64,000 nucleotides of DNA from Rebecca billardiae RCC1528 (taxonomy: Eukaryota; Protista; Haptophyta), in NCBI GenBank assembly GCA_965240325.2, contig OZ251231.1:2542001-2606000 (forward strand), written 5' to 3'. This document shows, piece by piece, positions 425-21,645 of this stretch. Position 1 is the stretch's first letter. Each line of letters opens with the position of its first letter. The notes under the pieces are model-generated. The model was not told the DNA's origin. It searched no databases and saw only the letters and a list, made by a program, of their open reading frames with translations. The translations under genes and the position numbers were made by a program.

Positions 425-503
425 ATATATATATATATATATATATATAGTATATATATATACTATATATATTATCGATCATATATATATATATATATAT
501 CAT
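425..503. repeat. (TA)n-rich microsatellite tract
   Basis: Interrupted ATATAT runs seen directly, in an otherwise GC-rich window. Confidence 0.9.
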
Positions 504-1546
504 ATCGTCGCAGCTATACTAGCAGCAGTCACATCGAATTCGATCTCAGAGTATAGACAATACGCCTACGGAATATTAATTGACCACCGCCTCGCGTCAT
601 GACGACGATCGATATGATTATCACAGTAAAGAAATCGATTTTCGGCGTTAAACCCGTCCGCACTTCCGCCCAGTGGGGATGCGCTGGAATTTTTTTCATG
701 CCCCGTTCGCGGCACTTCGCGCCGCGCACAGTGGAGAAAGATCGGGCCGGAAGCCGTTTGAGCATGGTCGGTCGTGCGCACGCCCATTCGAATCGATGGC
801 GCGCTCCGAGCGGCGGGCGTGCGCGCATGACTGCCGCGAGGGGGGCTGCGAGGCGTCGGCCGGCTTGCCAAGGCGGTTCCCTGGGGCGGCGTCACCCTCC
901 CCCGCCCCTCCTCGCCCACCCTCGCTCCACGGGCGGCCACACGTGACCTGTTGAGATGAGTTCACGGGGGCCGCGCGGCACGCGCGCGGAGAGGCGAGGA
1001 AGTGGTGTTTCGCGGAAAAGCGCAACGTCGCATTGTGATCAACCCATGTGGGCACCCGCTCCACACGTTTGTACGCATTCAAACCGCACACAGCGGCCTG
1101 AGCAGCTCCCAGACTGAGTTTCGCTCTTGAAGCCTGTTTTGGGGCCAGATCTTGGTGTGGATGTAGCGCGGCGAGGAGGCGCCGGGCGCGCGCCCGAGCT
1201 GCGTGCTGCCACTCGCCATGACCCATAGACATCGTCCGTCGCGAACGACCCGGCTCGCCTCGACCTCTCCGACCCGCCGGGCAGCCACGACCGAGCGCGC
1301 AGCCAACGGTGTCCAAACAGAGGCTTCTGCCTTCTCAGACCGCGTGGGATGGGCATAGGCGCGAGAGAGGGCGCCCAGCGCGCTCTTGAGATGCACAGGA
1401 GCACGCACTGATGCGTATGGAACCATCCCATCACGATCGCCCCGACCTGGCGCGCCCTATCTGGCCCGTCAGGCTGCCCGCGCCGCCGCCGCCGGGCCGC
1501 GCCGCCGCCACAGGCGCCGCCGCACCGCGGGCACATGGGTAAGTCC

Positions 1547-1842
1547 GTATTCAACAAATACAGAATTTCCGGTGCGGCCCTCTTTTGGGCGGCAAGGTCG
1601 GTCTGGTCGACACCTGCCGCGCGGCATGGGCCACGGCGCGGCGAGGTGGCGGCTGGCGCACCGCGGCGTGGGCGGGATGGCTCGAGGACACCACCGCCCC
1701 GCCTCCCACGCCGCGCCGTGCGCGTGCGCCGTGCTCTCGTCGCGTACCGATTTTCCTGCGACGAGCGACGTCCAACAGCGCGACCATGCCATCGCGCGAC
1801 GAGGTGCGTTCAGCTCGGCGATTTGTCGTATTTGTTGAATAC
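1547..1842. repeat. 296-bp segment bounded by a perfect 15-bp inverted repeat (MITE-like)
   Basis: GTATTCAACAAATAC (1547-1561) and GTATTTGTTGAATAC (1828-1842). No clear TSD. Confidence 0.5.
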
Positions 1843-2389
1843 ATGCGGGTACGAATCGGCCGCAAGATGGCCTCGACGTACACGTCGAGAGCCACGCGCG
1901 CGGTGTGGAGTGGCACGCGACGCGGAGAGGGCGGGTGCGGTGCCGCGGGCGCGCGACTGGTCTAGAACATCCCAATGAAGCGCGGGACGGCGCTGCGCGC
2001 CTGTGCTCGCCGCCGTCTCCTCGCAGTCGAAAATATCTGTGCACCCTTCTGGGTGCGCCCCCCGAGTTTTGCCAGAATCAGGGGTGTCCAGGAAGCCCCC
2101 CCCACCACGCTCTAGGGGCACCTAGAGCGGGGGCACCTTAGATTCCTGGCTGAGCGGTCTTTTACCCATCTGTAGGGACACTTCCGGAAGGTACCTGGCG
2201 CGGTGGTTGTGACCTATGCGCAATGATGCGTGCCGACTCGTAAATATTCCATACGCAACGACAGCGATCCGTCCAGTACGACGAGAGTGGATCTGATACC
2301 GCCAGGAGACAGGAGTAGACAGGCGCCGCGTGTTGCGGCGCAGCCGCCGCGCGCGGTCGTGCGGCGGCCAGCGGCGCGGCCGGGAGGAG

Positions 2390-4470
2390 CCCCCGCCCCG
2401 TATCAGTGATACAGGCAGATACAGTGATACAGTGATACACGGGTGGCCTGTAGTCCGGGTGCCGGCAGTCCGGGAGCGGACGGCGGCGCGCGCGGTGGCA
2501 GCTTGGCAAGGAGCCCCCCCCGTATCAGTGATACAGGCAGATACAGTGATACAGTGATACACGGGCCTGGCCTGTAGTCCGGGTGGCGGCAGTCCGGGAG
2601 CGGACGGCGGCGCGCGCGGTGGCAGCTGCTTGGCAAGGAGGGCCCCCCGTATCAGTGATACAGGCAGATACAGTCGTGATACAGTGATACACGGGCCTGG
2701 CCTGTAGTCCGGGTGGCGGCAGTCCGGGAGCGGACGGCGGCGCGCGCGGCGCGGCAGCTGGCAAGGAGGCCCCCCGTATCAGTGATACAGGCAGATACAG
2801 TGATACAGTGATACACGGGCCTGGCCTGTAGTCCGGATGGCGGCAATCCGGAAGCGGACGGCGGCGCGCGCGGCGCGGCAGCTGGCAAGGAGGCCCCCCG
2901 TATCAGTGATACAGGCAGATACAGTGATACAGTGATACACGGGCCTGGCCTGTAGTCCGGATGGCGGCAGTCCGGGAGCGGACGGCGGCGGGCGCGGCGG
3001 CGGCTTGGCAAGGAGGGCCCCCCGTATCAGTGATACAGGCAGATACAGTGATACAGTGATACAGGAGGCCTGCTGTAGTCCGGATGGCGGCAGTCCGGGA
3101 GCGGACGGCGGCGCGCGCGGCGGCGGCTTGGCAAGGAGGCCCCCTGTATCAGTGATACAGGCAGATACAGTGAATAGTGATACAGTGATACACGGGCCTG
3201 GCCTGTAGTCCGGGTGGCGGCAGTCCGGGAGCGGACGGCGGCGCGCGCGGCGCGGCAGCTGGCAAGGAGGCCCCCCGTATCAGTGATACAGGCAGATACA
3301 GTGATACAGTGATACAGGAGGCCTGCTGTACGGTCCGGGTGGCGACAGTCCGGGAGTGGACGGCGGCGGGCGCGGCGCGGCAGCTGGCAAGGAGGCCCCC
3401 CGTATCAGTGATACAGGCAGATACAGTGATACAGTGATACAGGAGGCCTGCTGTAGTCCGGATGGCGGCAGTCCGGGAGCGGACGGCGGCGCGCGCGGCG
3501 CGGCAGCTGGCAAGGAGGCCCCCCGTATCAGTGATACAGGCAGATACAGTGATACAGTGATACAGGAGGCCTGCTGTAGTCCGGGTGGCGGCAATCCGGG
3601 AGCGGACGGCGGCGCGCGCGGTGGCGGCTTGGCAAGGAGGCCCCCCGTATCAGTGATACAGGCAGATACAGTGATACCGAGTGATACACGGGCCTGGCCT
3701 GTAGTCCGGATGGCGGCAGTCCGGGAGCGGACAGGCGGCGCGCGCGGAGGCGGCTTGGCAAGGAGGCCCCCCGTATCAGTGATACAGGCAGATACAGTGA
3801 TACAGTGATACAGGAGGCCTGCTGTAGTCCGGATGGCTGCAGTCCGGGAGCGGACGGCGGCGGGCGCGGCGGCGGCTTGGCAAGGAGGCCCCCCGTATCA
3901 GTGATACAGGCAGATACAGTGATACAGTGATACACGGGCCTGGCCTGTAGTCCGGATGGCGGCAGTCCGGGAGCGGACGGCGGCGCGCGCGGCGGCGGCT
4001 TGGCAAGGAGGCCCCCCGTATCAGTGATACAGGCAGATACAGTGATACAGTGATACACGGGCCTGGCCTGTAGTCCGGGTGGCGACAGTCCGGGAGCGGA
4101 CGGCGGCGCGCGCGGCGCGGCAGCTGGCAAGGAGGCCCCCCGTATCAGTGATACAGGCAGATACAGTGATACAGTGATACAGGAGGCCTGCTGTCATACG
4201 GTCCGGGTGGCGACAGTCCGGGAGTGGACGGCGGCGGGCGCGGCGCGGCAGCTGGCAAGGAGGCCCCCCGTGTCAATGATACAGGCAGATACAGTGATAC
4301 AGTGAGTACACTGGGTGGCCTGTACTCTGTAGTCCGGGTGGCGGCAGTCCGGGAGCGGACGGCGGCGCGCGCGGCGGCGGCTTGGCAAGGAGGGCCCCCC
4401 GTATCAGTGATACAGGCAGATACAGTGATACAGTGATACAGCAGGTGGCCTGGTAGTCCGGGTGGTGGCA
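2390..4470 (+). repeat. ~125-bp tandem satellite, 17 units, forward orientation
   Basis: Core GTATCAGTGATACAGGCAGATACAGTGATACAGTGATACA starts at 2400, 2522, 2649, 2776, 2900, 3024, 3146, 3277, 3402, 3525, 3647, 3773, 3895, 4018, 4142, 4270 (variant) and 4401. Cores are separated by near-identical GC-rich linkers. Confidence 0.97.
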
Positions 4471-6811: not shown

Positions 6812-9800
6812 TCATGAAAAATGGCTGCCCGCGGCGGGACCTGCCGGCTGTGCATCGATGGCGTCGTCGTCATCGAGCAGGAACGAGTTCGTGCGCTGTG
6901 GGCTGTGGTCCGACGCGGCGTGCGAGCCGGGCCCGGCGGCCGGGTGTCGCAGCAGCCCGCCCACGCCGCGCCCCGCCTTGCCCAGGGCGCCCTTTGCCGA
7001 GGAGACAGCCTGCGGCGCGCGCTCGCCCGCCGTGTCGACCGCCTTCTCGACAGCGTCCACCATCCGGTCGACTGACGAGTCGACGGAGCTCCACGCGTCG
7101 CCCACGCGCGAGGCGAGCTTGCCGCCCGCGTCGCCGAGCTTGCGCACGAAGCCGAGGCGCGGGGGCAGGGATTGCCGCCGCATCTCGTCCGCGGACGCGC
7201 CCGCGCCGTGGCCGTTGCCGTTGGCGGCTTGGCCGCCGCGCCCGCCGCCGCCGAGCGCAGAGGCGGTGCCGCGCGCGGGCTCGGAGAGCGCCGGCGAGGG
7301 CAGGCCGCCGGTCGCGGGCGTGGGCGGCTCGGAGGGCTCGAATCCGTTCGCGCCGTCGTGCCGCGCGTGCTGCATCGCCGCGCCGGCGGACAGCGGCCCG
7401 CCGCCTCCGCCGCCGCCGCCCACGTCGACGAGCAGCTCAGCAAAGCCGCCGCTGTCCAGCCCGGCGCCGGCGCCGCCCGCGGCCGCCTGCTGCGCGGTCG
7501 GCGGCGTCACCACCGCACTGAACGCGGCCATGAAGTCGTAGTCGCTCACGACGCCTGCGGCTGAGGTCGGCGGCGGCGGCGAGGCGAAGGTGGGCGGCGG
7601 CAGGGCTGCGACCGCCGCGCCCCCGCTCCCGAGCGTGCCCCACGCATGCGCGCCGTTCGTCTGCCCAGGCGGCGCGCCGCACTGGCCGCGGCCGTGGCCG
7701 TGCGCGCCCGACTCGGGCGCCGCCCCAAACCCGGCCAAGGGCGCGTCACCACGCGCGCCACCGAGCGCGCCACCGAGCGCGCCACCGAGCGCGCCACCGA
7801 GCGCGTGGGCCGAGCCGCTCGGGCTGACGCCGAGAGCGCCGCTGGCGCAGGGCGAGGGCTGCGGGGAGAGCGGCGCGCTCTGCGGCGGCGGCGGCGGCGC
7901 GAGCATCGGCGGCGGCGGCGCATCAGCAAACAGCGGCGGCTGCGGCGGCGGCTGCGGCGGCGGCTGCTGCGGCTGCGGCGGCTGCGGCTGCGGCGACTGC
8001 TGCGGCGGCGGCTGCTGCGGCTGCTGCTGCTGCGGCGGCGCGCTCATCAGCGCGTCGAGCCCGCCCAGCCCCGACGAGGCGGAGGGCGAAGGCGATGCGC
8101 CGCCGCTGCCGCCGCAGCCACCGCCGCCGCCGCCGCCGCCCGCCGAGCCGCGGCGCGCGGCCGCCGCCTCGTGCTGCGCGCGCGAGGCGGCCGCGCGCGC
8201 CTCGTCTCGCTCCGCGCTGAGCGATGCGCACGCGTGCCGCAGCTGCGCGCACTGCGCGCTCGCGGCGTCGGCGCGCTTGGCGGCGGCGGCGGCGGCGTGC
8301 TGCGCCTCGGCGCGCGCGCGCGCCTCCGCCTCCGCCTGCGCCTCGCGCTGCGCGAGCTGCGCGCGCGCCGCCTCCGCCTCGGCGCGCGCCGCCTCCGCGT
8401 CCGCGGCCGCCGCCCTCACCGCCTGCGCCGCGCCCGCCATCGCGCCGTCGTCCGCGTCCGCCGCGCGGCGCGCGGCGGACGCGGCCTCGCTCGCGCGGCG
8501 CTCGGCCTCGTCGCGCGCGTCGCGCGCGGCCTGCACCTCCCTCCGCAGCTCCGCGCCGCCCTCCCGCTCCGCCGCCAGCTCCGCCGCCAGCGCCGCGAGC
8601 TTGGCCTTGGCCGCAGCCTTGAGCCGGGCGACACCGGCCGACGCCTCGGCCTTGAGGGCGGCGGCGCGCGAGGCGGCGTCGTCGGCGCGCGAGGCGGCGT
8701 CGGCGGCGCGCTCGCGCTCGGCGGCGAGCTCGGCGGCGAGCTCGGCCGCGCGCGCCTCCGCCGCCGCGAGCGCGCCCGACGCCGACGCGCCCGCGGCGGC
8801 CGCCGCCGCGTCGGCCGCGCGCGCCGCCTCCGCGCGCGCCGCGCCCAGCGCGGCGCGCGCCTCGGCCGCGGCCGCCTCCGCGCGCTGCGCGCGCTCGGCG
8901 GCGGCGGCGAGCGCCTCCTCGGCGCCGACGCGCGCGGCCTCGGCGGTGTCCGCGCGGCTCGCCTCGCTCTTGATCTCCGCGACCAGCTCGCCCATCTTGG
9001 CGCGCGCCTTGGCCTTGAGCGAGTCGGCGCGCGCCTCCGCAGCGGCGCGCGCGTCGGCGAGCTCGGCGCGCGCGGCGGCCGTTTCGGCGCGCGCGGCGGC
9101 GGCGGCGGCGGCGAGCTCGTCGGCGGAGGCGGCGCGCTCGTCGGTCGCGGCCTGGAGCGCGGCCTCGAGCTCCGCCACGCGCGCGCCGCGCGCCTCCGCG
9201 CGCCGCGCCGCCTCCGCCGCCTCGTCGCGCGCGTCGGCGAGCGCGGCCGCGGCGCCGTGCGCGCGCGCCGCGCGCGCCTCCGCCGCCGCGCCGAGCTCGG
9301 CGTCGGCGGAGGCGAGCTCGGCGCCGAGGGTGGCGACGAGCGCCTCGGCGGCGGCGGTGGTTCGCGCGCCGCGCTCGCGCTCCGCGTCGATCTTCGCCAG
9401 CACGCGCTTCTTCCACTCGCGGAAGTGCCCGACCTTGTCCTCGTGCGCGCGCACGGCCGCGCACAGCGCGCGCGCGTCGCCGTCCGCGTCGCCGAGCGCG
9501 GACGCGAGGAGGGCGGCGTGCGCGCGCGCCTCGGCGGTGGCGAGGGCGGCGGCGGCGAGGTCCTCCTCGTGCGCCTCGAGCGCCGCGCCGAACTGCGAGA
9601 CCACCTGCGCCTTGCTCGCCTCCGCGCCCTCCAGCCGCCGCGCCGCCTCCGCCGCGGCCGCGGCCGCGTCCGCGGCCGCGTCGGCGCGCGCGCGCTCGAG
9701 CGCCGCCGCCGCCTCGTCGGCGCGCGCGCGCTCGGCGTCGAGCGCGGCGAGCGCGTCGTCGCGCTCGCGCTCGAGCGCCTCCACCGCGCTCGCGCCGCGC

Positions 9801-10576
9801 TCCTCCACCTCGCGCAGCCGCGCGCGCAGCTCGTCGTCGAGAGCGCCCATCTTGCGCTTGGCGCGCGAGCGCGCGTCGAGCAGCGCGTCGCGCAGCGCGA
9901 CGCACGACTCGTCGGCGAGGGCGAGCTCGGCGGAGAGCGCGTTCACGGCGGCGCGCACCTGGGTGCGCGTCAGCTCCGCCTCGTACTCGTCGCGCGCCAC
10001 CTCCGTCATCAGCACGAGCGCGCGCGCGCGCGCGCGCGCCTCGCCCGCGCGCGCGTCGTCGGCTCGCGCCGCCGCCTCGTCCGCGGCGGCGAGCGCGTCG
10101 TCGGCCGTGTCGGTGGCGGCGCGCGCGGTGATCGAGGCGCCCACCAGCTCGTCGTCGAGCTGCAGCACCTCGCGCCCGAGCGCCGCCTCGCGCACGCGGC
10201 CCTCCGCCTCGAGGCTCTCCCTCTCGCGCGTCGCCTCCATCAGCGCGTCCTGGCTCTCATCGAGCTGCTCTCGCGCGGCCGCCTCGCGCGCGGCGCACGC
10301 GTCGAGCTCGGCGCGAGCGGCGGCCGCGGCGTCGGCGGCGTCGGAGGCGCGACGTTCCGCCGCCTCCGCCTGCGTCTTGAGCTTGAGCGCGCCCCGCCCC
10401 ACGATCTGCTCGAGGCCGAGCATCTTGCGCTGCGTGCGGTGCAGCATCGCGTCTCGCTCGTTCACCTGCTCGTACAGCGCGGCGACGGTGCGGCGGAGGG
10501 CCTTGGCCTCCTCGAGGGTGAGCCGCTCCTGCGCCTCGTCCTCGCCATCGCCCACGATGGCCTGCAGCCAGTCCAT
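6812..10576 (-). CDS. Large Ala/Glu/Arg-rich coiled-coil protein (~1254 aa) with a Pro/Gln-rich and Gly-rich C-terminal tail
   Basis: Single ORF; first ATG at 10576 (MDWLQAIVG...). About 800 aa of heptad-like helical sequence with coding-type GC3 bias. No catalytic motif recognised. Confidence 0.8.
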   Translation of the reverse strand: MDWLQAIVGDGEDEAQERLTLEEAKALRRTVAALYEQVNERDAMLHRTQRKMLGLEQIVGRGALKLKTQAEAAERRASDAADAAAAARAELDACAAREAAAREQLDESQDALMEATRERESLEAEGRVREAALGREVLQLDDELVGASITARAATDTADDALAAADEAAARADDARAGEARARARALVLMTEVARDEYEAELTRTQVRAAVNALSAELALADESCVALRDALLDARSRAKRKMGALDDELRARLREVEERGASAVEALERERDDALAALDAERARADEAAAALERARADAAADAAAAAAEAARRLEGAEASKAQVVSQFGAALEAHEEDLAAAALATAEARAHAALLASALGDADGDARALCAAVRAHEDKVGHFREWKKRVLAKIDAERERGARTTAAAEALVATLGAELASADAELGAAAEARAARAHGAAAALADARDEAAEAARRAEARGARVAELEAALQAATDERAASADELAAAAAAARAETAAARAELADARAAAEARADSLKAKARAKMGELVAEIKSEASRADTAEAARVGAEEALAAAAERAQRAEAAAAEARAALGAARAEAARAADAAAAAAGASASGALAAAEARAAELAAELAAERERAADAASRADDAASRAAALKAEASAGVARLKAAAKAKLAALAAELAAEREGGAELRREVQAARDARDEAERRASEAASAARRAADADDGAMAGAAQAVRAAAADAEAARAEAEAARAQLAQREAQAEAEARARAEAQHAAAAAAKRADAASAQCAQLRHACASLSAERDEARAAASRAQHEAAAARRGSAGGGGGGGGCGGSGGASPSPSASSGLGGLDALMSAPPQQQQPQQPPPQQSPQPQPPQPQQPPPQPPPQPPLFADAPPPPMLAPPPPPQSAPLSPQPSPCASGALGVSPSGSAHALGGALGGALGGALGGARGDAPLAGFGAAPESGAHGHGRGQCGAPPGQTNGAHAWGTLGSGGAAVAALPPPTFASPPPPTSAAGVVSDYDFMAAFSAVVTPPTAQQAAAGGAGAGLDSGGFAELLVDVGGGGGGGGPLSAGAAMQHARHDGANGFEPSEPPTPATGGLPSPALSEPARGTASALGGGGRGGQAANGNGHGAGASADEMRRQSLPPRLGFVRKLGDAGGKLASRVGDAWSSVDSSVDRMVDAVEKAVDTAGERAPQAVSSAKGALGKAGRGVGGLLRHPAAGPGSHAASDHSPQRTNSFLLDDDDAIDAQPAGPAAGSHFS

Positions 10577-11033
10577 CCAGCCGGCGGCCGCGCGAGGCGG
10601 CGCCGCCCTCGCAAAAGCGCGGCTCCGGCGTTGGGGCTCGGCGGTGGCGCGCACCCCTTGCTCGCGGCCGCCCGTCACGCGGTGAGGGCTCGGGCGGCCG
10701 CCCGCGGATCACGCCCATTTTGACGGCGAAGCAGGGCCGCGCGCATTTTTTATTCTTCGTCTGCTTTTCTAATTCGGACCCCCGATTGCCCGAGAGGAGA
10801 GGAGTCGCCAGTCGGGGCGGAGCCCGAGGTGTTTCGGTGCTGTCAATGTCACGGCGGTGACGGCGCTCGGCTCCGCGAGGACGATCACGACTGCGTCCAC
10901 GTGCCGCGTGCATGACAGCAACACGCAGGCTCCGATGGGCGGCTGGCCCTCCCACTGCCGCTCGCCGCCCCGCGCAGCTGGTGAGCCGTGCCACACGCGG
11001 CACGCGCCCTGCTCTGCCGCGTCGGAGCCAGGC

Positions 11034-12276
11034 TCAGTCGCGCCACTTGGTGCAGAGGGCGCCGATCGCAGTCAGGGCGACCGCACGCGCCCAGAGCGGC
11101 ACGCCTGCGCCCGCGGCGATCCCGAGCAGATGGCGCAGCCCCATCGCGCCGTAGTAGAAGGCGAGCAGCGTGCCGAGCAGCCCCAGGTAGCACGCGTACT
11201 GCGTCGGCACTGGCAACGTCCTGCCGCGGGGGGCGCGGCACGCGGGCGGGTCGGCGCGCGCGCGCGTGCCCGCAGCTGAGTGCGCCTCGCTCGCGCGCTC
11301 CGCGCGGCTCAGCGCGGCGCAGCGCCGTGGCGCACCAGTCGAGGAAGAAGTATGGCTGCCACGCGCGCGCGCGCGCCGCGGGCGGGAGGGCGGGCGAGGG
11401 CGGGTGAGCCGGCGCCCCGCGTGGCGCGGCGCGCGCGCTCGGTGCGTGTGCGTGCGCGCACGGCCGCACGGCCGCACGGCCGCACGGCCGCACACGCACA
11501 AAGTTGCCGCCATTGCCCTTCCACTTGCCCACGCTGCCCGGCGCCGGCTGCTTGGCGAGCCGAGCGAGCTCGGGCGCGTGCGCCCAGGAGAAGCCGATGA
11601 AGGCGACCCCCCAGAGCATGCCGATCGCGGCGTGCTCGTACGAGAGCGGCAGCGCGCCGACGAGCAGCTCGGCCAGAATCTCGAAGAGGTTCATGTTGTG
11701 CATCGTCAGGTTCCACGGCTCGTGCAGGTCGTGCGGCGCGCGCTTGCGCACGAGCTCGGGCCAGATCACGTACGCGGTGACGACGCTGACGACGCAGCCG
11801 CAGCCCGCGGTCATCTCGAAGAGGTAGTGCGCCAGCCGCACCACCCCCGCGCCCGCCAGCCCGGGCCTGCCGAACGCCAGCGCCGCCGAGCAGAGCGCGC
11901 CGAGCGCGAAGAAGAGCCCCTGCGCCGAGTACGTCCAGATCGTGAAGAACGTGTACATGCGCTTTGCGCCGTGGAGGGAGAGCGTCTCGTCCTGCAGCAG
12001 CGAGCCCATGCCGCGGTTGTACTTGACGTTGAACTCGAAGGTGGGCAGGTTGTACATGTACGCCAGCATGCCCAGGTGGATGAGCGCAAAGCACGCGCGC
12101 AGGCCGAGCATCGTCACCGCCGACACCTCCGGCACGCTCGAGCCGCCGGCCTGCTCGAGCGTGAGCGGGATGGAGCGGTCGATCGCGAGGCACCACAGCG
12201 CGACGAGCACGAACACCACCGCGAGCGCCACGCACGCGAGCGGCGGCGCCGTCTGCGCCTGCGAGCGCGTCGCCAT
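11034..12276 (-). CDS. Multi-pass membrane protein, FAR-17a/AIG1/rolling-stone-like; exons 12276-11500, 11355-11336, 11220-11034
   Basis: Several hydrophobic helices; FFTIW and MHNMN motifs; PYFFLDW restored by splicing two GT-AG introns (144 and 115 nt) around a 20-nt micro-exon. Confidence 0.75.
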
Positions 12277-12630
12277 CGGGCCAGCGAAGTTTCCGGAAAA
12301 GTCGCCCGCCGACCAGCGCGACCTGCTGCTCGTGGCGACGGCGGACGCGGCGCTCTCCGCGCTGCGCTCGGCCGAGCTCGGCGAGTCGCTCGCGCTCGGC
12401 CGGGCGGGCGGCGCGCACGACTGGAGAAATCGGCACCACACGTCTGGGCCCAGCGGCAGTGGCAGCTACCGGACCGGCCCTCCCAGCCGGAATATGCCTT
12501 GTCACTGGCCACCCGAGCGACCACAGCCACTGGCTTGCTCACTGGTCGCTCGGCTTACTGGTCGCCCGCGCTCGCCGGCGGGCGCGCGTCGTTCGAGTGG
12601 CGCTTCCCCTCCGAGCGTCGAGGCGAGGCG

Positions 12631-15553
12631 ATGGCGACGCGCGCGTCGGCTCGGGTGGAGGCGCGCGCCGCGCAGGCGGCGGACGAGTCCGACACCGCGA
12701 GCTCGGCCTCCTCGGCCGACGAGCACGAGGGCGCGGGCGCGCGCGGACGCGCGCGCGGGCCGCCGCGCTCGAGCGCGCGGCGGCGCAGCGGCGCGCGAGA
12801 GGCGGGCTCGGCGGGCGGCGCGGCGGCGGAGGAGAGCCCGGCGCGCGCGCAGCCGCCCGCCAAGCGCGCGCGCGGCGCCGATCCCGCGCCCGCGCCGCCT
12901 GAGCCGGCCGAGCCCGGCGCGGAGCGCTGGGGCATTCGGCCGGGCGTGGCGGTCGAGGTGCGCATGAGCGACGAGGGGTGGGAGGGCAGCTGGTACGCGG
13001 CGACGGTGCTCGGCTCGCGCGGCGCGCGCGTGCGCATCAAGTGGGATGCCGCCAGCCACCCCGACGACGAGGAGGAGGCGATGGTCGACGCGCCCGCGCT
13101 GCGGCCCGTGCAGCCGAGCGCGCCCGCAGACTTTGCGCGAGCGCTCGCGCCCGGCGCGCGCGTCGAGCTGCGGCACGACGAGGGCTGGTGGGAGGTGGAC
13201 GTGCTGAGCGCGGGGCGGCGCAGCTACACCGTCAGCTCCGAGCTGTACGGCGTGACGCACGAGCACGTCGACCCGCGCCGGCTGCGCCCGCGCTGGGTGT
13301 GGGAGCCGCAAGGCGGGCACGCGCGCGAGGGCTGCTGGCGCGACGCGTCCGAGCCGGCCAACAAGTACAAGCGCGACGGCACCGAGCTCGGCCCGCCGCC
13401 GCCGCCGCCGGGCGCGGCGGGCGCGGCGGGCGCGCAGCAGGGGCTGCCGCACGCCGCGTCCGCGGGCGCCGCCACGCGCCGCGCGAGCGCGCCGCCCGCG
13501 CCCTCGGCGGCGGGCGGCGCGCAGCTCGGCGCCGCGCGCGCCGCGCTCGAGAGTGCGCACGCGGCGCTGGCTGCATACCGCCCGCCGTCGGCGCGCGCGA
13601 ACGCGTTCCAGGAGGGCACGCTGCGCACGGGCGAGGACGGCGCGAGCTGGGAGGTCGCCATCGCGGACAACGGCTCGAGCGTCTGGGCCCTCGAGGGCGA
13701 CGTGCCGCGCTTCCTCGCGCTGCACAACGCGCTGCACGCCAAGAGCGCGGCGGTGCGCAGGCTCGAGCGCGCGCTGCCGAGCGCTGGCGCGGGCGGCGGC
13801 GGCGGGGGCGGCGGGGGGCGCGGGGAGCGGAGCGCGGCGGCGGCGGAGGCGGAGGCCGCCGCCGAGGCCGCCGACGCCGAGCAGCGCTACGCCGACGCCC
13901 TCGCCGCGTGGCGCTCCGAGCTGGAGGGCCGCGTGGAGAGCGAGCTGCGCGCGCTGTGCGAGCAGGCGCGCGCGCGCTCGGGCGCGGAGCGCCGCCGTCT
14001 CAACGACGAGCTCGAGACGTCGGCGGCGTGGGAGTTCGAGTACGTCGGCGTGCGCCGCGCGCCGACGGACCTCGACGCGCCGACCTCGCGCGCCGAGCAG
14101 TACGAGGCCGTGCTCGACGACGGCACCTCCGCCGGGCTCGCGCCGACCGCGCGCGACGCCGCGCTCCGCCGCCACTTCCACGCGGCCGCGCACGCCGCCG
14201 CGCGCGCCGCGCTGCCGCAGCCCGACCGCGAGGGCGTGGAGGCGCGGCACGCGGAGCGGGAGGGGCCGGCCCGCCGCGCGGCGCGCAAGTACGCGTACGA
14301 CGACGACGACGACGACGACGACGACTACTCGGAGAACATGTGGACCAAGCGGAAGGGCGGCGGCGGCTCGGGCGTGCGCACGCGCCGGTGCAACGCTTGC
14401 GCGGGCTGCACGCGCGACAACTGCGGCAAGTGCGCGCACTGCCTCAACATGGTGCAGTACGGCGGCAGCGGCCGGTCGAAGCAGGCGTGCAAGCTGCGCA
14501 AGTGCCAGAACCCCTTCCTCCCCGACGACGCCGACGCCGCCGCCGCCGCCGCCAAGGCTCGGCGCGCGGGCGCGGGCGAGGAGGAGGAGGCACCAGACCG
14601 CTGGGGGCTCGGCCTCTCAGCGTATGGCCTCCCGGACTGCGAGATCCCGCAGCGTCCGGTGCGCGTGCGGCTGCTGGTGCGCGACCCGGAGGGCGGCGTG
14701 CTCGTCGAGGCGCCCGCGCCCGAGGGCTGGAGGCCCGGCGGCGGCGGCCGGCTCGACGCGCCCGCCGCCGAGGGCGGCGCGTCGGGCGCGCCGCGCGCGG
14801 CCGCGCCGCTCGGCGACGCGGACGCCGAGGCGGCCGCGCCGATGGAGCTGGCCGACGAGCCGCCCGCCGAGGCGGCGGCGGTGCTGAAGGCGGAGCCGCC
14901 CGCCGACGCGCCCTCGCCGATGGAGACGGAGCCGCCCGCCGACGCGCCCTCGCCGATGGAGTCGGAGCCGCCCGCCGGCGCGCCGCCAGCGCGCGCGGCC
15001 GAGCCGGCGGCCGCGCCAGAGGGCGGCGCGCGGACCGCGGCGCACGAGGCCGCGCCCCCGCCCGCCGCCGCCGCGGCGGCGCCCGCGCAGCCGCCCGCCG
15101 CCGCGGCGCGCGCGCCGGCGGACGCGGACGCGCCCGCGCGCCGCGCCGCGGCCGAGCCGAGCGCTGCGGAGGGCGCGCCCTCGCTGGAGGCCACAGCCGG
15201 GGCCGCGGCGGCCGGGGCCGCAGCGGGTGCAGAGCTGGCGGAGGTGACACCGGAGGTGACGCCGCCGCTCGCGCAGCGCCCCGCCGCGCCGATGCGCACG
15301 CCGAGCGCGCCCACCGCCGCCTCCGCCGCCGAGCCGCCCGCCGCCGAGCCGCCCGCCGCGGCGACGGCTCTTGCGCCCGGCGCCGCCGCGCCGCCGGCGT
15401 CGGCGCGCGCCGCGCCGCCCGCCGCGGCCGACAAGGGCGAGGGCGAGGGCGAGGGCGCTCCGCTCGCGGCGCTCGCGCCCACGCCCGCGCCGCGCCGCTC
15501 CGCGCGCGCCGCCGCCGCCAGTGCCGCCGCCGCCTCGCCGCCCGCCGCGGACG

Positions 15554-15603
<50 letters not shown>

Positions 15604-16486
15604 GCGCCCGCGCCGCCGCTCCCCGCGTGGGCGCCGCGCACGCTGGACGGAGTGGAGGTGCGCATGAGCGGCGAGGGCCAGCACGGCTCGTGGTACGCGG
15701 CCACGGTGCTGCACGTGCGCGGCGGCCGCGCGCGCGTGCGCTACGCCGAGCTGCGCGAGGAGTACGACGCGAAGCGGCTGCAGGAGGCGTGGGTGGACGT
15801 GGCCGAGCTAAGGCCCACGCCGCCGAGCGCGCCGCCCGGCTGGGTGCGCGAGCTCCGCGTCGGCGCGCCGCTCGAGCTGCGCGTGCTCGACGGCTGGTGG
15901 GAGGTCGACCTGGTGCGCACCGCGCGCACGCGCGCGGGCCGCGGCCCGAGCTACACGCTCGTCGCGCCGCTGTACGGCATCGTGCACGCGGACGTGCCGG
16001 CGGCGCGGCTGCGGCCCGCGTGGCTCTTTGAGCCTGCGCGCCCGCCGTGGGGCGCGCTCTGGACGCTCGCCTCCTCCGGCCAGCGGTACACGTGGCGCGG
16101 GGACGAGCTGCCGCGCGCGGAGCCGCTGAGCGGGCCCGCGGCGCGCGGCCGCGCGCCGAGCGCCGGCCCGAGCGGCTCGCGCCCCGCCGACGCCTCGGGC
16201 TCGGAGGGCGGCGGCAGCGGCAGCTCGTCGGAGGACGAGGGCATGGCCGTGCTGCGAGCGCTCGCGGGCGCGCGCGCGCGCGGCGGCGCGCACGACGCCG
16301 GCGCCGAGGCGGACGGCGAGGAGGAGGCGGGGGACGCGGAGGCGGACGCGTGCGCCGTGTGCGCCGCGCGCCGGGCCAAGAAGCGCGGCCGGTGCGCGCG
16401 CCACCGCGCCGCGACGACCATCACGCTCGGCGGCGCGCGCCGCGGCGAGGGCGGCGCGTCAGAGGCGGGGCGCTCCGCCGGCCGCT

Positions 16487-16535
<49 letters not shown>

Positions 16536-17751
16536 GGCGGAGCGCGTCGCGGCGGAGCGCGCGGCGCGTCGGCGCGCGCGGCTGCTGCAGCTGCCGCCCA
16601 CCTGCGTGCTCGACCGCGTCGTCACCCCGCGCGACTTCCTGTACGACCAGGTGGTCGAGTCGGCGCGCTCCTCCACGGGCTACCGCGGCGTGTACGGCCA
16701 CCTGTCCGAGGACGGCCGCTCCGTCAAGTACTACGAGGCGCAGGTGAGCGTGCGCGGCGCGTCGCTCGCGGTCGGGCGCGCGCAGAGCGCGCACGAGGCC
16801 GCGCTGCTGCGCGCCGAGTGGATCGCCGGGCTCGAGACCGTCGGCGGGCTGCCGCGCGTCGGCGGCAAGGCGGAGCGCGACGCCCTCACCGAGCAGCCCG
16901 CGCGCGCGTCCAAGCGCGAGCGCAAGGCCACGCGCGCGCCCGCCTCGCCCTCCTCCTCCGAGGCGTCGTCGTCCGAGTCGGAGGTGGAGCTGCAGATCGG
17001 CGACCTCGTCGAGGTGCGCGTGCAGGACGAGGGCTTCGAGGGCAGCTGGTACGGCGCCACCATCGCGCGGCTCGACGGGCTGCGCGCGCTCGTGCGGTAC
17101 ACACACCTGATGGAGGCGGACGGATCGGAGGTGCCGCTCGAGGAGTGGATCGTGCTGCCGCACCTGAGGCCGCCGCCGCCGAAGCGCCACCCGCCGGGCT
17201 TCCCCGAGAGCGTCGCGCCGCGCGAGGCGCTCGAGCTCTGGCACGACGACGGCTGGTGGGCGGTGCAGAAGGTCGAGGAGCCCGCGGACGAGCTGGCGGC
17301 GGGCGCGGCGCGCGCCGCGGCCGCGGCCGCGCCCGCCGCCGACGCGGCGGCGCCCGCCGACGCCGACGTGCCCCGCTACCTGGTGCGCGCGCTCAACTTC
17401 AAGGCAGAGCACCGCGCGCGCGCGGACGAGCTGCGCCCGATGTGGCAGTGGCTCGGCGGGCACGAGTGGAAGGTGCTGCGCCACCAGCCCAGGCGCAAGT
17501 CGATGCTGCTCGGCGGCACCGCGCTCGCGCGCGCCGCCGAGAGCGTGTACGGAGCGGCGGGCGCGCGCGACTCGATCGGCGCGGGCGGCAAGGTCGCGCT
17601 GGCCGCGGTCGAGGCGCTCGGCACGCCCGCCGCGTGGGAGGTCGGCGCGTTCGCCGAGGTGGCCTTCGAGGTGGTCACGTTCCTCTGCCGCCGCCGCGAG
17701 CTGTGCGCCGCGCTGCGCGCGCGCCGCGCGCACCGCCTCGCCAACGCCGCC

Positions 17752-17782
<31 letters not shown>

Positions 17783-20102
17783 ACGCCGCGCCCGCGGCGG
17801 ACGCGGCGGCACCCGCGGCCGCGGCCGCGCCCGCGGCCGCCGAGGCCGAGGCGAAGGACGTGGGCGCCGCGAGCGCGAGCGCGGCGAGCGAGCTCGCCGT
17901 GCCCTTCCAGCCGATCGCGCTGCCGCCCGCGCTGCCGCCCGCGCGCGGGCTCGTCTGCTTCGACGCGGGCGGCGCGTCCTCGCGCGGAGGCGGCAAGGCG
18001 GCCGCGGCCGCGGCCGCCGCCGCGACGGTCGCCGCGGCGGCGGCCGCGCTCGCGCACGCGCCGCCGCCGAGCGCCGAGCCGCCGGCGGCCCCGCCGCCGC
18101 CGCCGCCCCACGCCGCGCCGCCGCCGCCCCACCAGATCAACCTCGTCGTGCCCGCGGGCAAGGGCCCGGGCGACGTGCTGGCGGTGAGCACGCCCGCGGG
18201 CGGGATGGTGCACGTGCGGCTGCCGGCGGGCGTGGCCGCGGGCCAGCTGTGCCGCTTCGATCTGCCCGTGCAGCGGCCGCACGGCGGGTGGCAGCCGGCG
18301 GCTGCGGCGCAGCACGCGCCGCCGCCGCAGCACGCGCCGCAGCACGCGGGGCACGCGTGCGCGCAGCCGCAGCTGCGCGCGCAGCACGCGCCGGGCGCGG
18401 GCGCGCAGCAGCACGCGCCGCCCGTGCACACGGCGCCGCACGGCGCGTGGCCGCCGATGGCGCCGCCCTACTCGCAGCCGCCGCCGCAGCAGATGATGGC
18501 GCACGGGCAGATGGTGCCGACGCAGGCGCAGCCCATGCAGCCCATGCAGCCCATGCAGCCCATGCAGCCCATGCAGCCCATGCAGCCCATGCAGCCCATG
18601 CAGCTGCCGCCGCCGCCGGGCGGCGGCGCCGTCGTCGCGCCGGGCGCGCCTGGCCGGGGCGGCGGCGCGCCCCCGCCCTACCACCCGCCGCCGCCGTCCA
18701 GCGGCGACGGCGGCGGCATGGCGGTCGGCGACGGGCTCGCTCGGCCGGGCGCGCCGCTCGGCCCGTCGCAGCACGCGCCGCCGCCCGCGCCCGCGGCAGG
18801 CGCGGCGGCCGCGCCGCCCGCGCCGCCGCCCGCCGCGCCCGCGCCCGCAACCGACGCCTACCCAAACCCCGCGAGCGCCGAGTTGCGCCACGGCGCGCTC
18901 GTGCGCGCGCTCGCCGAGCTCGGCCCGCACGAGGCGGTGCGGCTCGCCGTCTCCAGCCCGATGCCGCAGCCGGGCCACGGCAGCGGCGGCAAGTGGGCGC
19001 GCGGCGCCGAGCTGGTCGTGGCCAAGAACCACTTCAGCGTGCTCACCAACCTGACGGAGGGCGGGCCGTACGGCACGGCGACGCTGCTGGTCGAGCACGC
19101 GGGCACGCGCGCGCTGCACGTGCTGCGGCTGGCGCAGGGCGTGCCCGTCGGGCTGGGCTTCGCGATGGCGGCGCACGCCGCGGCGCGGCTGCGCGCCCTC
19201 GCGCCCGAGCTCGGCGCGGAGTGCGCCGAGCACGGCGCGGTGCGCGTGCCCTCGCGCCTCGTCTGCTTCCACAACGGGTACGGCTCGCTCGCACCGTACA
19301 GGCAGTGCGTCACGCTGGCCGAGCTGAACGCCGCCTTCTCCGAGTCGCACCGCCGCGTGGACGAGGTGCTCACGATGGCGTACACCGTCGAGCTCCTCCG
19401 CCTCGTCGAGCAGCTGCACCGCGCGGGCGTGGTGCACGGCCAGCTCGCGGCCGAGCACGTGCTGCTCACGATGGCGGAGGGCGCGGACGAGGAGGGCGCG
19501 GAGGGCGAGGCGGAGGGGCGGGCGCCGCACCGCGCGGCGGCGGCGGCGAGCGTGGAGCCGCCGCCCGTGAAGCGGCGCGGCCCGGGCCGGCCCAAGAACA
19601 GCGAGCTCGCCGTCGAGCTCGCCGCGAAGGCGGCGGCCGCGGCCGAGCGCGCGGAGGCCGCGCCAGCCCCGGAGCCGGGCTCCTACAAGCCGCGCGTGCG
19701 CCTGCAGCTGATCGGCACGTCCAAGGCCCTCGACCTCAAGCAGCACCCACACGTGTGCGCAACAGCCGCGCACCGCGCGCACCGCGCGCACCGCACGCAC
19801 CGCACGCGCGGCTCTGAGCGCGCGCCGCCCTGCCCCGCGCGCGCGCGCCGCGCTTGCTTCGCCTCGTTGCGCGCGCTGTGCGCCGCAGGGCGTGCTCTTC
19901 AAGCTGCCGCCCGTGCACCCGAAGGAGGCGCGGTGCGTGGAGCAGCTGGACGGCAGCCCGTGGTCGTGGCACGTGGACACGTTCGGGCTGTGCTCGGTCG
20001 TGCACATGCTGCTGTTCAACGAGCCGCTCAACCTCGAGCTGGTGAGACGCGCGGCAGCGCACCCGTGTGTGCGCGCGCGCGTGTGCGTGTGCGTGTGTGC
20101 GC

Positions 20103-20133
<31 letters not shown>

Positions 20134-21645
20134 TGTGCGTGTGCGTGTGCGTGCGTGTGCGTGCGCGTGCGTGCGCGTGTGTGTGTGTGTGTGTGCGTGT
20201 GCGTGTGCATGCGTGCGTGTGCGTGTGTGTGCGTGTGCGTGCGTGTGCGTGCGCGTGTGTGCGCGCGCAGGCGGGGGCCGGGGCGCGCGTCTCGGGGACG
20301 CCAGTGCGCGCTTGTGACAGCGCGCGTGCCTCTGACGCCCGCACGCGCCCACGCGCGGCGCGCGCTCGCGCCCGGCTGCGCGCCAGGCGATGGCCGACCT
20401 GAAGAAGGTGCACGCCGAGAAGGAGAAGGAGCAGCGGCTGCAGCGCAAGGCTGCCAAGCTCGCGGCGGCGGGCGGCAGCGGCGCGGCCGCGCCCGCCGCC
20501 GCGCCCGCCGCCGCCGCGGCGGACGGCGGCGCGCAGCCGGCCGCGCCTGCCGCCGCCCCGTCCGAGCCCGCGCCCGCTGCCGAGTCCGAGCAGCCCGCCC
20601 TCTCCGCGTACGAGCAGGCGCGCCGGGAGACGATGGAGCGCAACCGCCAGATGATGGAGCAGCTGGGGCTGCTCAAGGTGCGGAGTGCGCACGCGCCGCG
20701 CTGCCCGGCACGCAGCGGCAAGCGAGCGCACGGCGGGCGGGCCGGCGCCGAGGGCCGGCGGCCGAGGGCCTTCGCCGCTCACGCCAGCGCGCGCGCCCCT
20801 CCCCCGCCCCGTCCCTGCGCCCCCGCCGCCCCGCGCGCGCAGGCGGCCAAGGAGGTGAAGGAGAACGGCGGCGCGGAGCACGCGCCCGCGCAGCGCAAGC
20901 GCGGCCGTCCGCGCAAGAGCGACGCGCCGCGCGACGAGGAGGAGGAGCTGGACGAGGGCGCGGAGGAGCGGCGCAAGAAGCGGCTGCTGCAGCGCTCCTC
21001 TGTGGGCGAGGACGGCATCTGGCGGCCGCACTTGCCGCTCAAGCGGTGCGCACCGGCCCCGCGCGCTGCGGCCTCGCGCGCGCGCGAGTGGCTGTGGCTG
21101 TGGCTGGGTTGGGACGCCGGCCAGCTGAGCGCGAGGCGCGCGGCCGCCCTCCTCGCGCCCCGCCCCGCCCGCCGTGACCGAGCAGGTACTGGCAGGTCGA
21201 GCTGTGGCAGTCGCTCTTCTCGCGGCTGATCCACGTGCCGCCCGGGCAGCCGTGCCCCGCGCTCGCGCAGATCCGAGCCGAGTTCGAGGCGCACCTGGCC
21301 GCGCCCGCGCAGCAGGCAGAGCTGCGCTCCGCGCTCGCGCGGCAGCGCTCGGTGATCGACTCGCGCGCGGAGCGCTCGCAGCGGCTGCTGCTCAACCGCA
21401 AGATCCACGTCGACGCGCTGCGCAAGGCGCTCGCCGCCGTCGCGGCCGACATCGTGCCCAACCCGGTCGAGCAGCCGGCCGCAGAGCCCGAGCTGCGCGT
21501 GCCGGTGGGCGTGGTGCAGGAGGCGCTCGTCGAGATCTTTGGCGAGTGCGCGGAGGCCGAGCTGGTGGGCGCGCTCAACAAGGCGGTGCACACGGGCAAG
21601 CTGAGCGTCGCGGGCGGCGACTTCCAGCCCGCGCTGCTCCAGTGA
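12631..21645 (+). CDS. Multidomain chromatin protein: 3 tandem Agenet/Tudor pairs, CXXC zinc finger, AP2-like domain, AT-hook-like motifs, Bub1-like pseudokinase; exons 12631-19752, 19889-20041, 20387-20677, 20843-21045, 21186-21645
   Basis: VEVRxxxEGxxGSWY / DxGWW Agenet motifs at about 12950, 15650 and 17010. CXXC: [20 protein letters not shown]...KQACKLRKC (14380-14511). AP2-like: SSTGYRGV...YEAQ...AHEAA (16669-16824). Kinase C-lobe: [20 protein letters not shown] and [10 protein letters not shown]. Four GT-AG introns with consistent phases. Confidence 0.8.
18529..18603 (+). repeat. Coding 9-bp minisatellite (CAGCCCATG)x8 encoding (QPM)n
   Basis: Seen directly within the large chromatin gene. 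Confidence 0.9.
20060..20268. repeat. Intronic (GT/GC)n alternating purine-pyrimidine tract
   Basis: About 200 bp of GTGTGC/GCGC repeats inside intron 20042-20386. Confidence 0.9.

Follow-up and report, generated by a model that had tools for sequence, protein, structure and literature searches.

To our knowledge, Bub1-type kinase domains have been described solely within MadBub checkpoint proteins, and the nucleosomal substrate of active Bub1 is H2A. MadBub genes have undergone repeated duplication and subfunctionalization, in the course of which the kinase was kept, disappeared or degenerated, always in proteins bearing a tetratricopeptide repeat (TPR) domain (PMC5204127, PMC5579357). In plants, AGDP1/ADCP1, described as a plant HP1, reads dimethylated lysine 9 of histone H3 (H3K9me2) through three tandem Agenet pairs (PMC6208443, PMC6318295), and its binding cage is made up of Tyr122, Trp127 and Phe144 together with Glu149 (PMC6208443). 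Here we describe a gene that has features of both systems. It lies at positions 12631-21645 (+) of a 64,000-nucleotide stretch of the genome of Rebecca billardiae RCC1528 (contig OZ251231.1, positions 2,542,001 to 2,606,000), called the window below. The region is about 80% G+C, and its host is a very GC-rich haptophyte of the Pavlovales group.

Like Bub1 and BubR1, the predicted protein has the alphaE/catalytic-loop helix, the CxE..G.PW...D.FG region of helix alphaF and the KRYWQ.ELW C-terminal extension, and, as in BubR1, its kinase domain is a pseudokinase. Unlike these proteins, it has no detectable TPR, has lost five catalytic residues, carries AT-hook inserts of about 75 and about 200 residues as well as an extra conserved tail, and presents the fold after a chromatin-reader array instead of kinetochore-docking modules. 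It shares with AGDP1/ADCP1 the presence of three tandem-Agenet cassettes per chain; AGDP1 itself has no CXXC finger, AT-hooks or kinase fold. By comparison with the CXXC proteins DNMT1, MLL1, KDM2A/B and CFP1, it lacks a methyltransferase or demethylase domain. The recombination of domains is real and conserved, and we found no published description of it; literature searches on Bub1 with Agenet, CXXC with pseudokinase, and haptophyte with kinetochore returned nothing relevant.

In the R. billardiae genome, the readers and the kinase fold share one uninterrupted coding frame. We consider it probable (about 60%) that the gene joins a chromatin-reader array to a dead Bub1-family fold, the product serving as a multivalent scaffold on chromatin and the fold as its binding module.

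Results

Gene model and coding frame

Three orthologues were found, namely the window gene, that of Pavlovales sp. CCMP2436 (protein P0014) and one on a JGI metagenome contig (L005). Reading the forward frames together with the DNA at each frame switch gave a gene of four exons, 2,797 codons and three GT-AG introns:

12631-19752 (+), exon 1, 7.1 kb and 2,374 codons from the ATG, stop-free; reader array, low-complexity linker and kinase N-lobe to strand beta8
19753-19888 (+), intron 1, GT..AG, phase 0; P0014 crosses the junction without a gap
19889-20041 (+), exon 2, kinase P+1/APE-equivalent region and helix alphaF; about 70% identity with both orthologues
20042-20386 (+), intron 2; the junction agrees with P0014 and L005
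20387-21045 (+), exon 3, C-lobe insert of about 200 residues, after which the Bub1 fold resumes
21046-21185 (+), intron 3, GT..AG inside an Arg codon; an intron lies at the equal position in L005 and is read through by P0017
21186-21645 (+), exon 4, Bub1-type C-terminal helices (YWQVELW stretch), tail of about 50 residues and stop at 21643-21645; 55-61% identity to the orthologues

Since long open reading frames (ORFs) come cheaply in GC-rich DNA, we used codon-position composition as evidence of coding. The G+C content of third codon positions (GC3) is 0.90-1.00 in each 150-nt interval of exon 1, in a single frame. Values drop to 0.6-0.8 over the 150 nt preceding the ATG, within the introns and past the stop, and rise again in exons 2-4, in their shifted frames. 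With this signal unbroken, coding sequence runs all the way from the readers to the kinase. The splice model also agrees with the contiguous P0014, which is unbroken across all three intron positions of the window gene. The model shows one gene, whose predicted product is chromatin-bound and about 2,800 residues long.

A decaying pseudogene was ruled out by the intact frames, the motifs and the matching splice junctions in three species, two of which have the same introns. Nearly all of intron 2 is a GT/GC-rich tandem array (20065-20263) with periods of 58 nt and 10 nt.

A Bub1-type kinase fold

The first part of the kinase fold lies at the end of exon 1:

18997-19752 (+), Bub1-type pseudokinase from the N-lobe to beta8, by HMMER and alignment; 57% identity with P0014

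Pfam Pkinase was not detected in the pieces of the window gene, which gave only weak Kdo and Kinase-like matches. In the PDB, exon 2 alone matched only BubR1 and BUB1 (4.8e-6 and 1.6e-4), the kinase part of exon 1 had BubR1 as its weak top match (0.065), and exon 4 alone had no match. When P0014 was compared with the whole PDB, BubR1 (2.2e-15) and human BUB1 (about 2e-12) were followed by the next kinase at an E value of 0.34 or worse, and a second stretch of P0014 aligned its C-terminal extension to the BubR1/BUB1 chains. We used this gap of 11 orders in E value in place of an outgroup-rooted kinase tree.

The kinase part of exon 1, searched exhaustively with HMMER against 1.84 billion representatives, recovered only 13 proteins at E<=1e-3. 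The top two are orthologue fragments, P0001 (an ORF from an MMETSP transcript) and P0002 (partial, from Pavlovales sp. CCMP2436). Four longer matches are Bub1/MadBub-type kinases by their source names, Pfam and alignment, among them a Salpingoeca "BUB protein kinase" and Balamuthia BUB1, and a fragment of 304 residues clusters with a protein of 1,205 residues that carries Mad3_BUB1_I plus a kinase. Five others are short fragments alignable to the catalytic-loop helix of Bub1; the sole exception is a generic multi-kinase protein.

Profile and structure comparisons pointed the same way. The orthologue profile matched a canonical Bub1 kinase profile with an hhalign probability of 98.2% (E 2.9e-14). 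An AlphaFold model of P0014 had a predicted local distance difference test score (pLDDT) of 70, with the C-lobe above 90 and the N-lobe poor. Foldseek placed Bub1/BubR1 at ranks 1-6 for this model, over about 400 aligned columns and with target-normalized template modelling (TM) scores of 0.57-0.64, and other kinases lower, over about 190-240 columns; these ranks are those of an orthologue model with a low-pLDDT N-lobe, built from a multiple sequence alignment that contained Bub1s. Human BUB1 (4R8Q, 4QPM) and Drosophila BubR1 (6JKK) are thus the only significant PDB sequence matches and the best structural matches. The Bub1-specific C-terminal extension (the KRYWQ.ELW..F..LLN helices) aligns with Balamuthia, fungal and other Bub1s. 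On these comparisons, the C-terminal kinase fold of the gene clearly belongs to the Bub1/BubR1 family. An earlier note on this DNA, made from its letters and ORF translations, had read the kinase as Bub1-type and without the N-terminal TPR; both assignments hold, and all the kinase motifs that it quoted are present.

The Mad3/Bub1 TPR domain (Mad3_BUB1_I, PF08311) was not detected at E<=0.1 anywhere in exon 1 (2,374 residues), in a scan that returned it at 1e-34 and 1e-38 in P0005 and P0016. This result bears on the possibility that the gene is the working kinetochore MadBub/Bub1 of its lineage, with the readers replacing TPR-KNL1 docking and the fold serving as a spindle-checkpoint scaffold. 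The kinase fold and C-terminal extension are indeed typical of Bub1, MadBub genes have been repeatedly reshaped, and BubR1 retains a pseudokinase (PMC5204127). We nevertheless regard such a role as distinctly improbable: apart from the missing TPR domain, the H2A kinase function of Bub1 requires catalysis, which is lost here, and KEN was seen as a tripeptide once only, in exon 3, at a place where the orthologue stretches that could be aligned do not share it, no systematic search for GLEBS or KEN motifs having been made. Moreover, canonical TPR-plus-kinase MadBubs are present in GC-rich protist contigs (P0016), and the ancestral form has therefore not been generally replaced.

One contig, L002, an ENA metagenome contig of 70% GC, encodes at 452-4069 a canonical MadBub of 1,205 residues (Mad3_BUB1_I and an apparently active kinase), whose source need not be a haptophyte.

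Loss of the catalytic residues

We read the catalytic residues from an alignment of the window protein and both orthologues with canonical Bub1s. The earlier note had found HGQ in place of HGD and GTS in place of DFG, and both replacements were seen again, together with the loss of the beta3 Lys, the alphaC Glu and KPDN. The beta3 Lys is missing in all three species; the window protein has VLRL, with Arg at 19126-19128, or lacks the position. The alphaC Glu is likewise missing in all three. HGD is HGQ in the window (19435-19443), and HTQ and HTA in the orthologues, and KPDN of the catalytic loop is AAEH in the window, and TAEH and SADH in the orthologues. GTS stands at 19714-19722 in place of DFG/DLG, and the aligned DFG/DLG position reads IGT in the window, and LGL and VGF in the orthologues. 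By contrast with these losses, the helices that build the C-lobe are 57-72% identical among the window protein and its orthologues.

Since all five catalytic residues are lost in all three species, the losses are old and maintained. Judged by these residues, the fold is an old, maintained pseudokinase that is catalytically dead. From the published lineage-specific duplications of MadBub (PMC5204127) it follows that its inactivation would be independent of that of vertebrate BubR1.

Some annotated pseudokinases have later proved to be active, and a partial Gly-rich loop (EGGPYG) persists in the window protein, as would suit a kinase of atypical type, or some other nucleotide-dependent enzyme, working with non-canonical residues. 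An enzyme of this kind is very hard to reconcile with the loss of five of five canonical residues, with Gly in place of the DFG Asp in all three species, and with Gln, Gln and Ala in place of the HGD Asp, a position unconserved even among these three proteins. We consider it highly improbable.

AT-hooks, inserts and C-terminal tail

Two inserts in surface loops of the fold carry the GRP-type AT-hook motifs that had been noticed in the earlier reading of the sequence. The first, GPGRPK (19570-19599), is in the beta7-beta8 insert of about 75 residues and is shared by the window and L005 alone. The second, KRGRPRK (20891-20920), is in the C-lobe insert of about 200 residues and is kept in all three orthologues. 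This C-lobe insert is otherwise divergent and includes a helical motif, quoted in 21 letters and without family assignment, which is conserved in three of three orthologues (window 20591-20680, P0014 residues 316-341, L005 1280-1366). After the Bub1 C-terminal helices follows a tail of about 50 residues (approximately 21490-21642), in which identity among the three species is about 70% and exceeds that of the kinase itself. The tail had no Pfam or PDB match; sub-threshold winged-helix leads alone were found (DsrD and the MCM3 winged-helix domain, score 0.76).

The reader array

The reader array makes up the N-terminal two-thirds of the predicted protein and is followed by a linker:

12931-13330 (+), tandem Agenet cassette 1; Pfam Agenet 8.7e-13, two stretches
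14023-14230 (+), possible first AP2-like segment, weak; 29% identity to the segment 16621-16860
14371-14505 (+), CXXC zinc finger of the unmethylated-CpG-binding type; Pfam zf-CXXC 1.7e-10, 41 bits against a cutoff of 26.5
15640-16050 (+), tandem Agenet cassette 2; Pfam Agenet 4.9e-13
16672-16845 (+), AP2-like segment, unproven; weak model-based leads
16993-17470 (+), tandem Agenet cassette 3; Pfam Agenet 7.1e-17
17471-18996 (+), Ala/Pro/Gln-rich linker; no Pfam family match

The three Agenet pairs and the CXXC finger proposed from the letters alone are borne out, the former by three Pfam matches (9e-13 to 7e-17) and, as to their tandem arrangement, by alignment and the AGDP1 structures. The cassettes are mutually 38-51% identical, in an alignment that takes in the GWW stretch of the second Agenet. 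Cassette 3 matched AGDP1-type tandem Agenet chains in the PDB (6ie5, 5zwz, 6ie4 and 5zwx, 1.6e-11 to 1e-6), in an alignment that spans the first Agenet and the start of the second, the rest of which is divergent. The cage Trp of AGDP1, in the GWW stretch, and the adjacent Asp are retained in the cassettes, the Trp in all three, and the positions of the cage Phe and Glu fall outside their alignable part.

CXXC fingers of the DNMT1/MLL kind bind unmethylated CpG. The nearest PDB chain to the window finger is DNMT1 (6.6e-11), followed by MLL, KDM2A/B, FBXL19 and CFP1. The finger has eight Cys at canonical spacing in two clusters, all conserved by comparison with DNMT1. Its DNA-contact loop, quoted in 10 letters, is identical to that of DNMT1, and KFGG corresponds here to QYGG.

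The AP2-like domain proposed in the earlier note was not confirmed. What stands is a low-confidence model with a beta-beta-beta-alpha topology: the segment 16672-16845 had no Pfam (PF00847) and no PDB sequence match, and its AlphaFold2 model had a pLDDT of 60. Compared with AP2 structures, this model gave a Foldseek E value of about 1 and VIA Z values of 5.4, 4.8 and 4.4, tied with double-stranded RNA-binding domains and others. An Atlas feature lead of 0.90 pointed to phage clusters, and PF00847 occurs in some of these. For the segment 14023-14230, a PDB sequence search gave two chance-level matches and no AP2 protein.

Within the linker, 18528-18604 is a perfect repeat (9 nt x 8.6, 100% identical) that codes for a QPM run and resembles a recent or polymorphic expansion. 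At about 18130-18260, the linker also has a short beta-rich motif, quoted in 34 letters, that is like a small repeated PG-type module and has no Pfam match.

Orthologous sequences

P0014 (544 residues) is a contiguous member of the P0001 cluster and derives from transcript contig L003, which maps to the CCMP2436 genome at 100% identity over many small exons. L003 opens with a Pro/Gln-rich ORF, 306 open codons long. L005 is a GC-rich genomic contig with the same exon layout as the window, including the Arg-splitting intron before YWQVELW. Word-index searches with the kinase region and with the AP2-like plus Agenet-3 region came back blank, probably swamped by low-complexity words, as did two metagenome scans with kinase peptide patterns, in a collection evidently without even the known JGI contigs.

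Discussion

We propose that the dead fold, unable to phosphorylate, would have been retained as a binding surface. Its likeliest partner may be the nucleosome/H2A region that active Bub1 phosphorylates, or else another protein. The AT-hooks would keep the fold on DNA, the Agenet and CXXC readers would set the location of the protein on chromatin, and the possible AP2-like segments could be additional DNA-binding parts of the reader array.

Several points weigh against a chromatin scaffold of this design. That readers and fold are carried by one mRNA is predicted from the genome sequence. The orthologue sequences start inside or just before the kinase, L003 and L005 being short, and the CCMP2436 locus (L001) is 46% N, with the reader array there neither found nor excludable. 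In L003, the reading frame changes between the Pro/Gln-rich ORF and the kinase ORF, over a repeated segment of 38 nt. Nei-Gojobori ratios of nonsynonymous to synonymous substitution (dN/dS) are 0.3-0.8, and carry little weight with dS depressed by a GC3 near 1. Finally, cassettes 1-3 have His, Leu and His where AGDP1 has its cage Tyr, and the histone mark bound by the cassettes is therefore uncertain.

Some of these points would also suit a locus with two products, in which readers and pseudokinase are made apart from each other, an internal promoter or start within the low-complexity linker being one way, and the ORF overstates the fusion. Chance long ORFs are common at 80% GC, and the ORF of exon 1 extends upstream to 11266, overlapping an opposite-strand gene. 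In-frame Met codons do occur in the linker, and the recovered orthologue sequences cover linker and kinase only. The linker, however, keeps a GC3 of 0.94-1.00 (17500-18950) in the same frame, a signal that flanking intergenic DNA loses, and there are zero stop codons from the last Agenet cassette to the kinase. The orthologue transcript likewise has more than 230 open Pro/Gln-rich codons before the kinase, reaching the contig end. We therefore consider separate products unlikely.

A more specific version of the scaffold reading can be put forward as a speculation that we rather doubt. The Bub1 fold might dock on nucleosomes (the C-terminal tail of H2A) without catalysis, having been exapted together with the AT-hooks in Pavlovales-type haptophytes as the effector of an ADCP1-like heterochromatin or centromere scaffold. 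In that case it would be the first domain of Bub1 descent known to act outside MadBub checkpoint proteins.

If the fold has indeed been transferred to a reader array, stripped of catalysis, given AT-hooks and then kept in at least three species, it would have a role beyond phosphotransfer. The AGDP1/ADCP1-like design of three cassettes occurs, on the present matches, outside land plants, here beside a DNMT1-like CXXC finger, and the combination of Agenet and CXXC bears on heterochromatin organization in haptophytes. The gene is thus relevant to the fields of kinetochore evolution and algal chromatin.

Other features of the loci

The kinase region of CCMP2436 is split into at least 12 small exons, against four exons for the entire window gene, so that these related algae differ greatly in intron density. 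Introns at L001 hold copies, 81-97% identical, of parts of neighbouring exons:

8099-8146, copy of 8227-8274
9978-10022, copy of 10126-10170
11789-11842, copy of 11603-11656
16259-16310, copy of 16361-16412

Artefacts of haplotype or assembly, the scaffold being rich in N runs, or real local duplications may account for these copies.

In the window, the upstream neighbour at 10885-12441 (-) resembles a multi-pass membrane protein. Its distance from the ATG at 12631 is only about 190 bp, an interval that probably serves both genes as a divergent promoter region.

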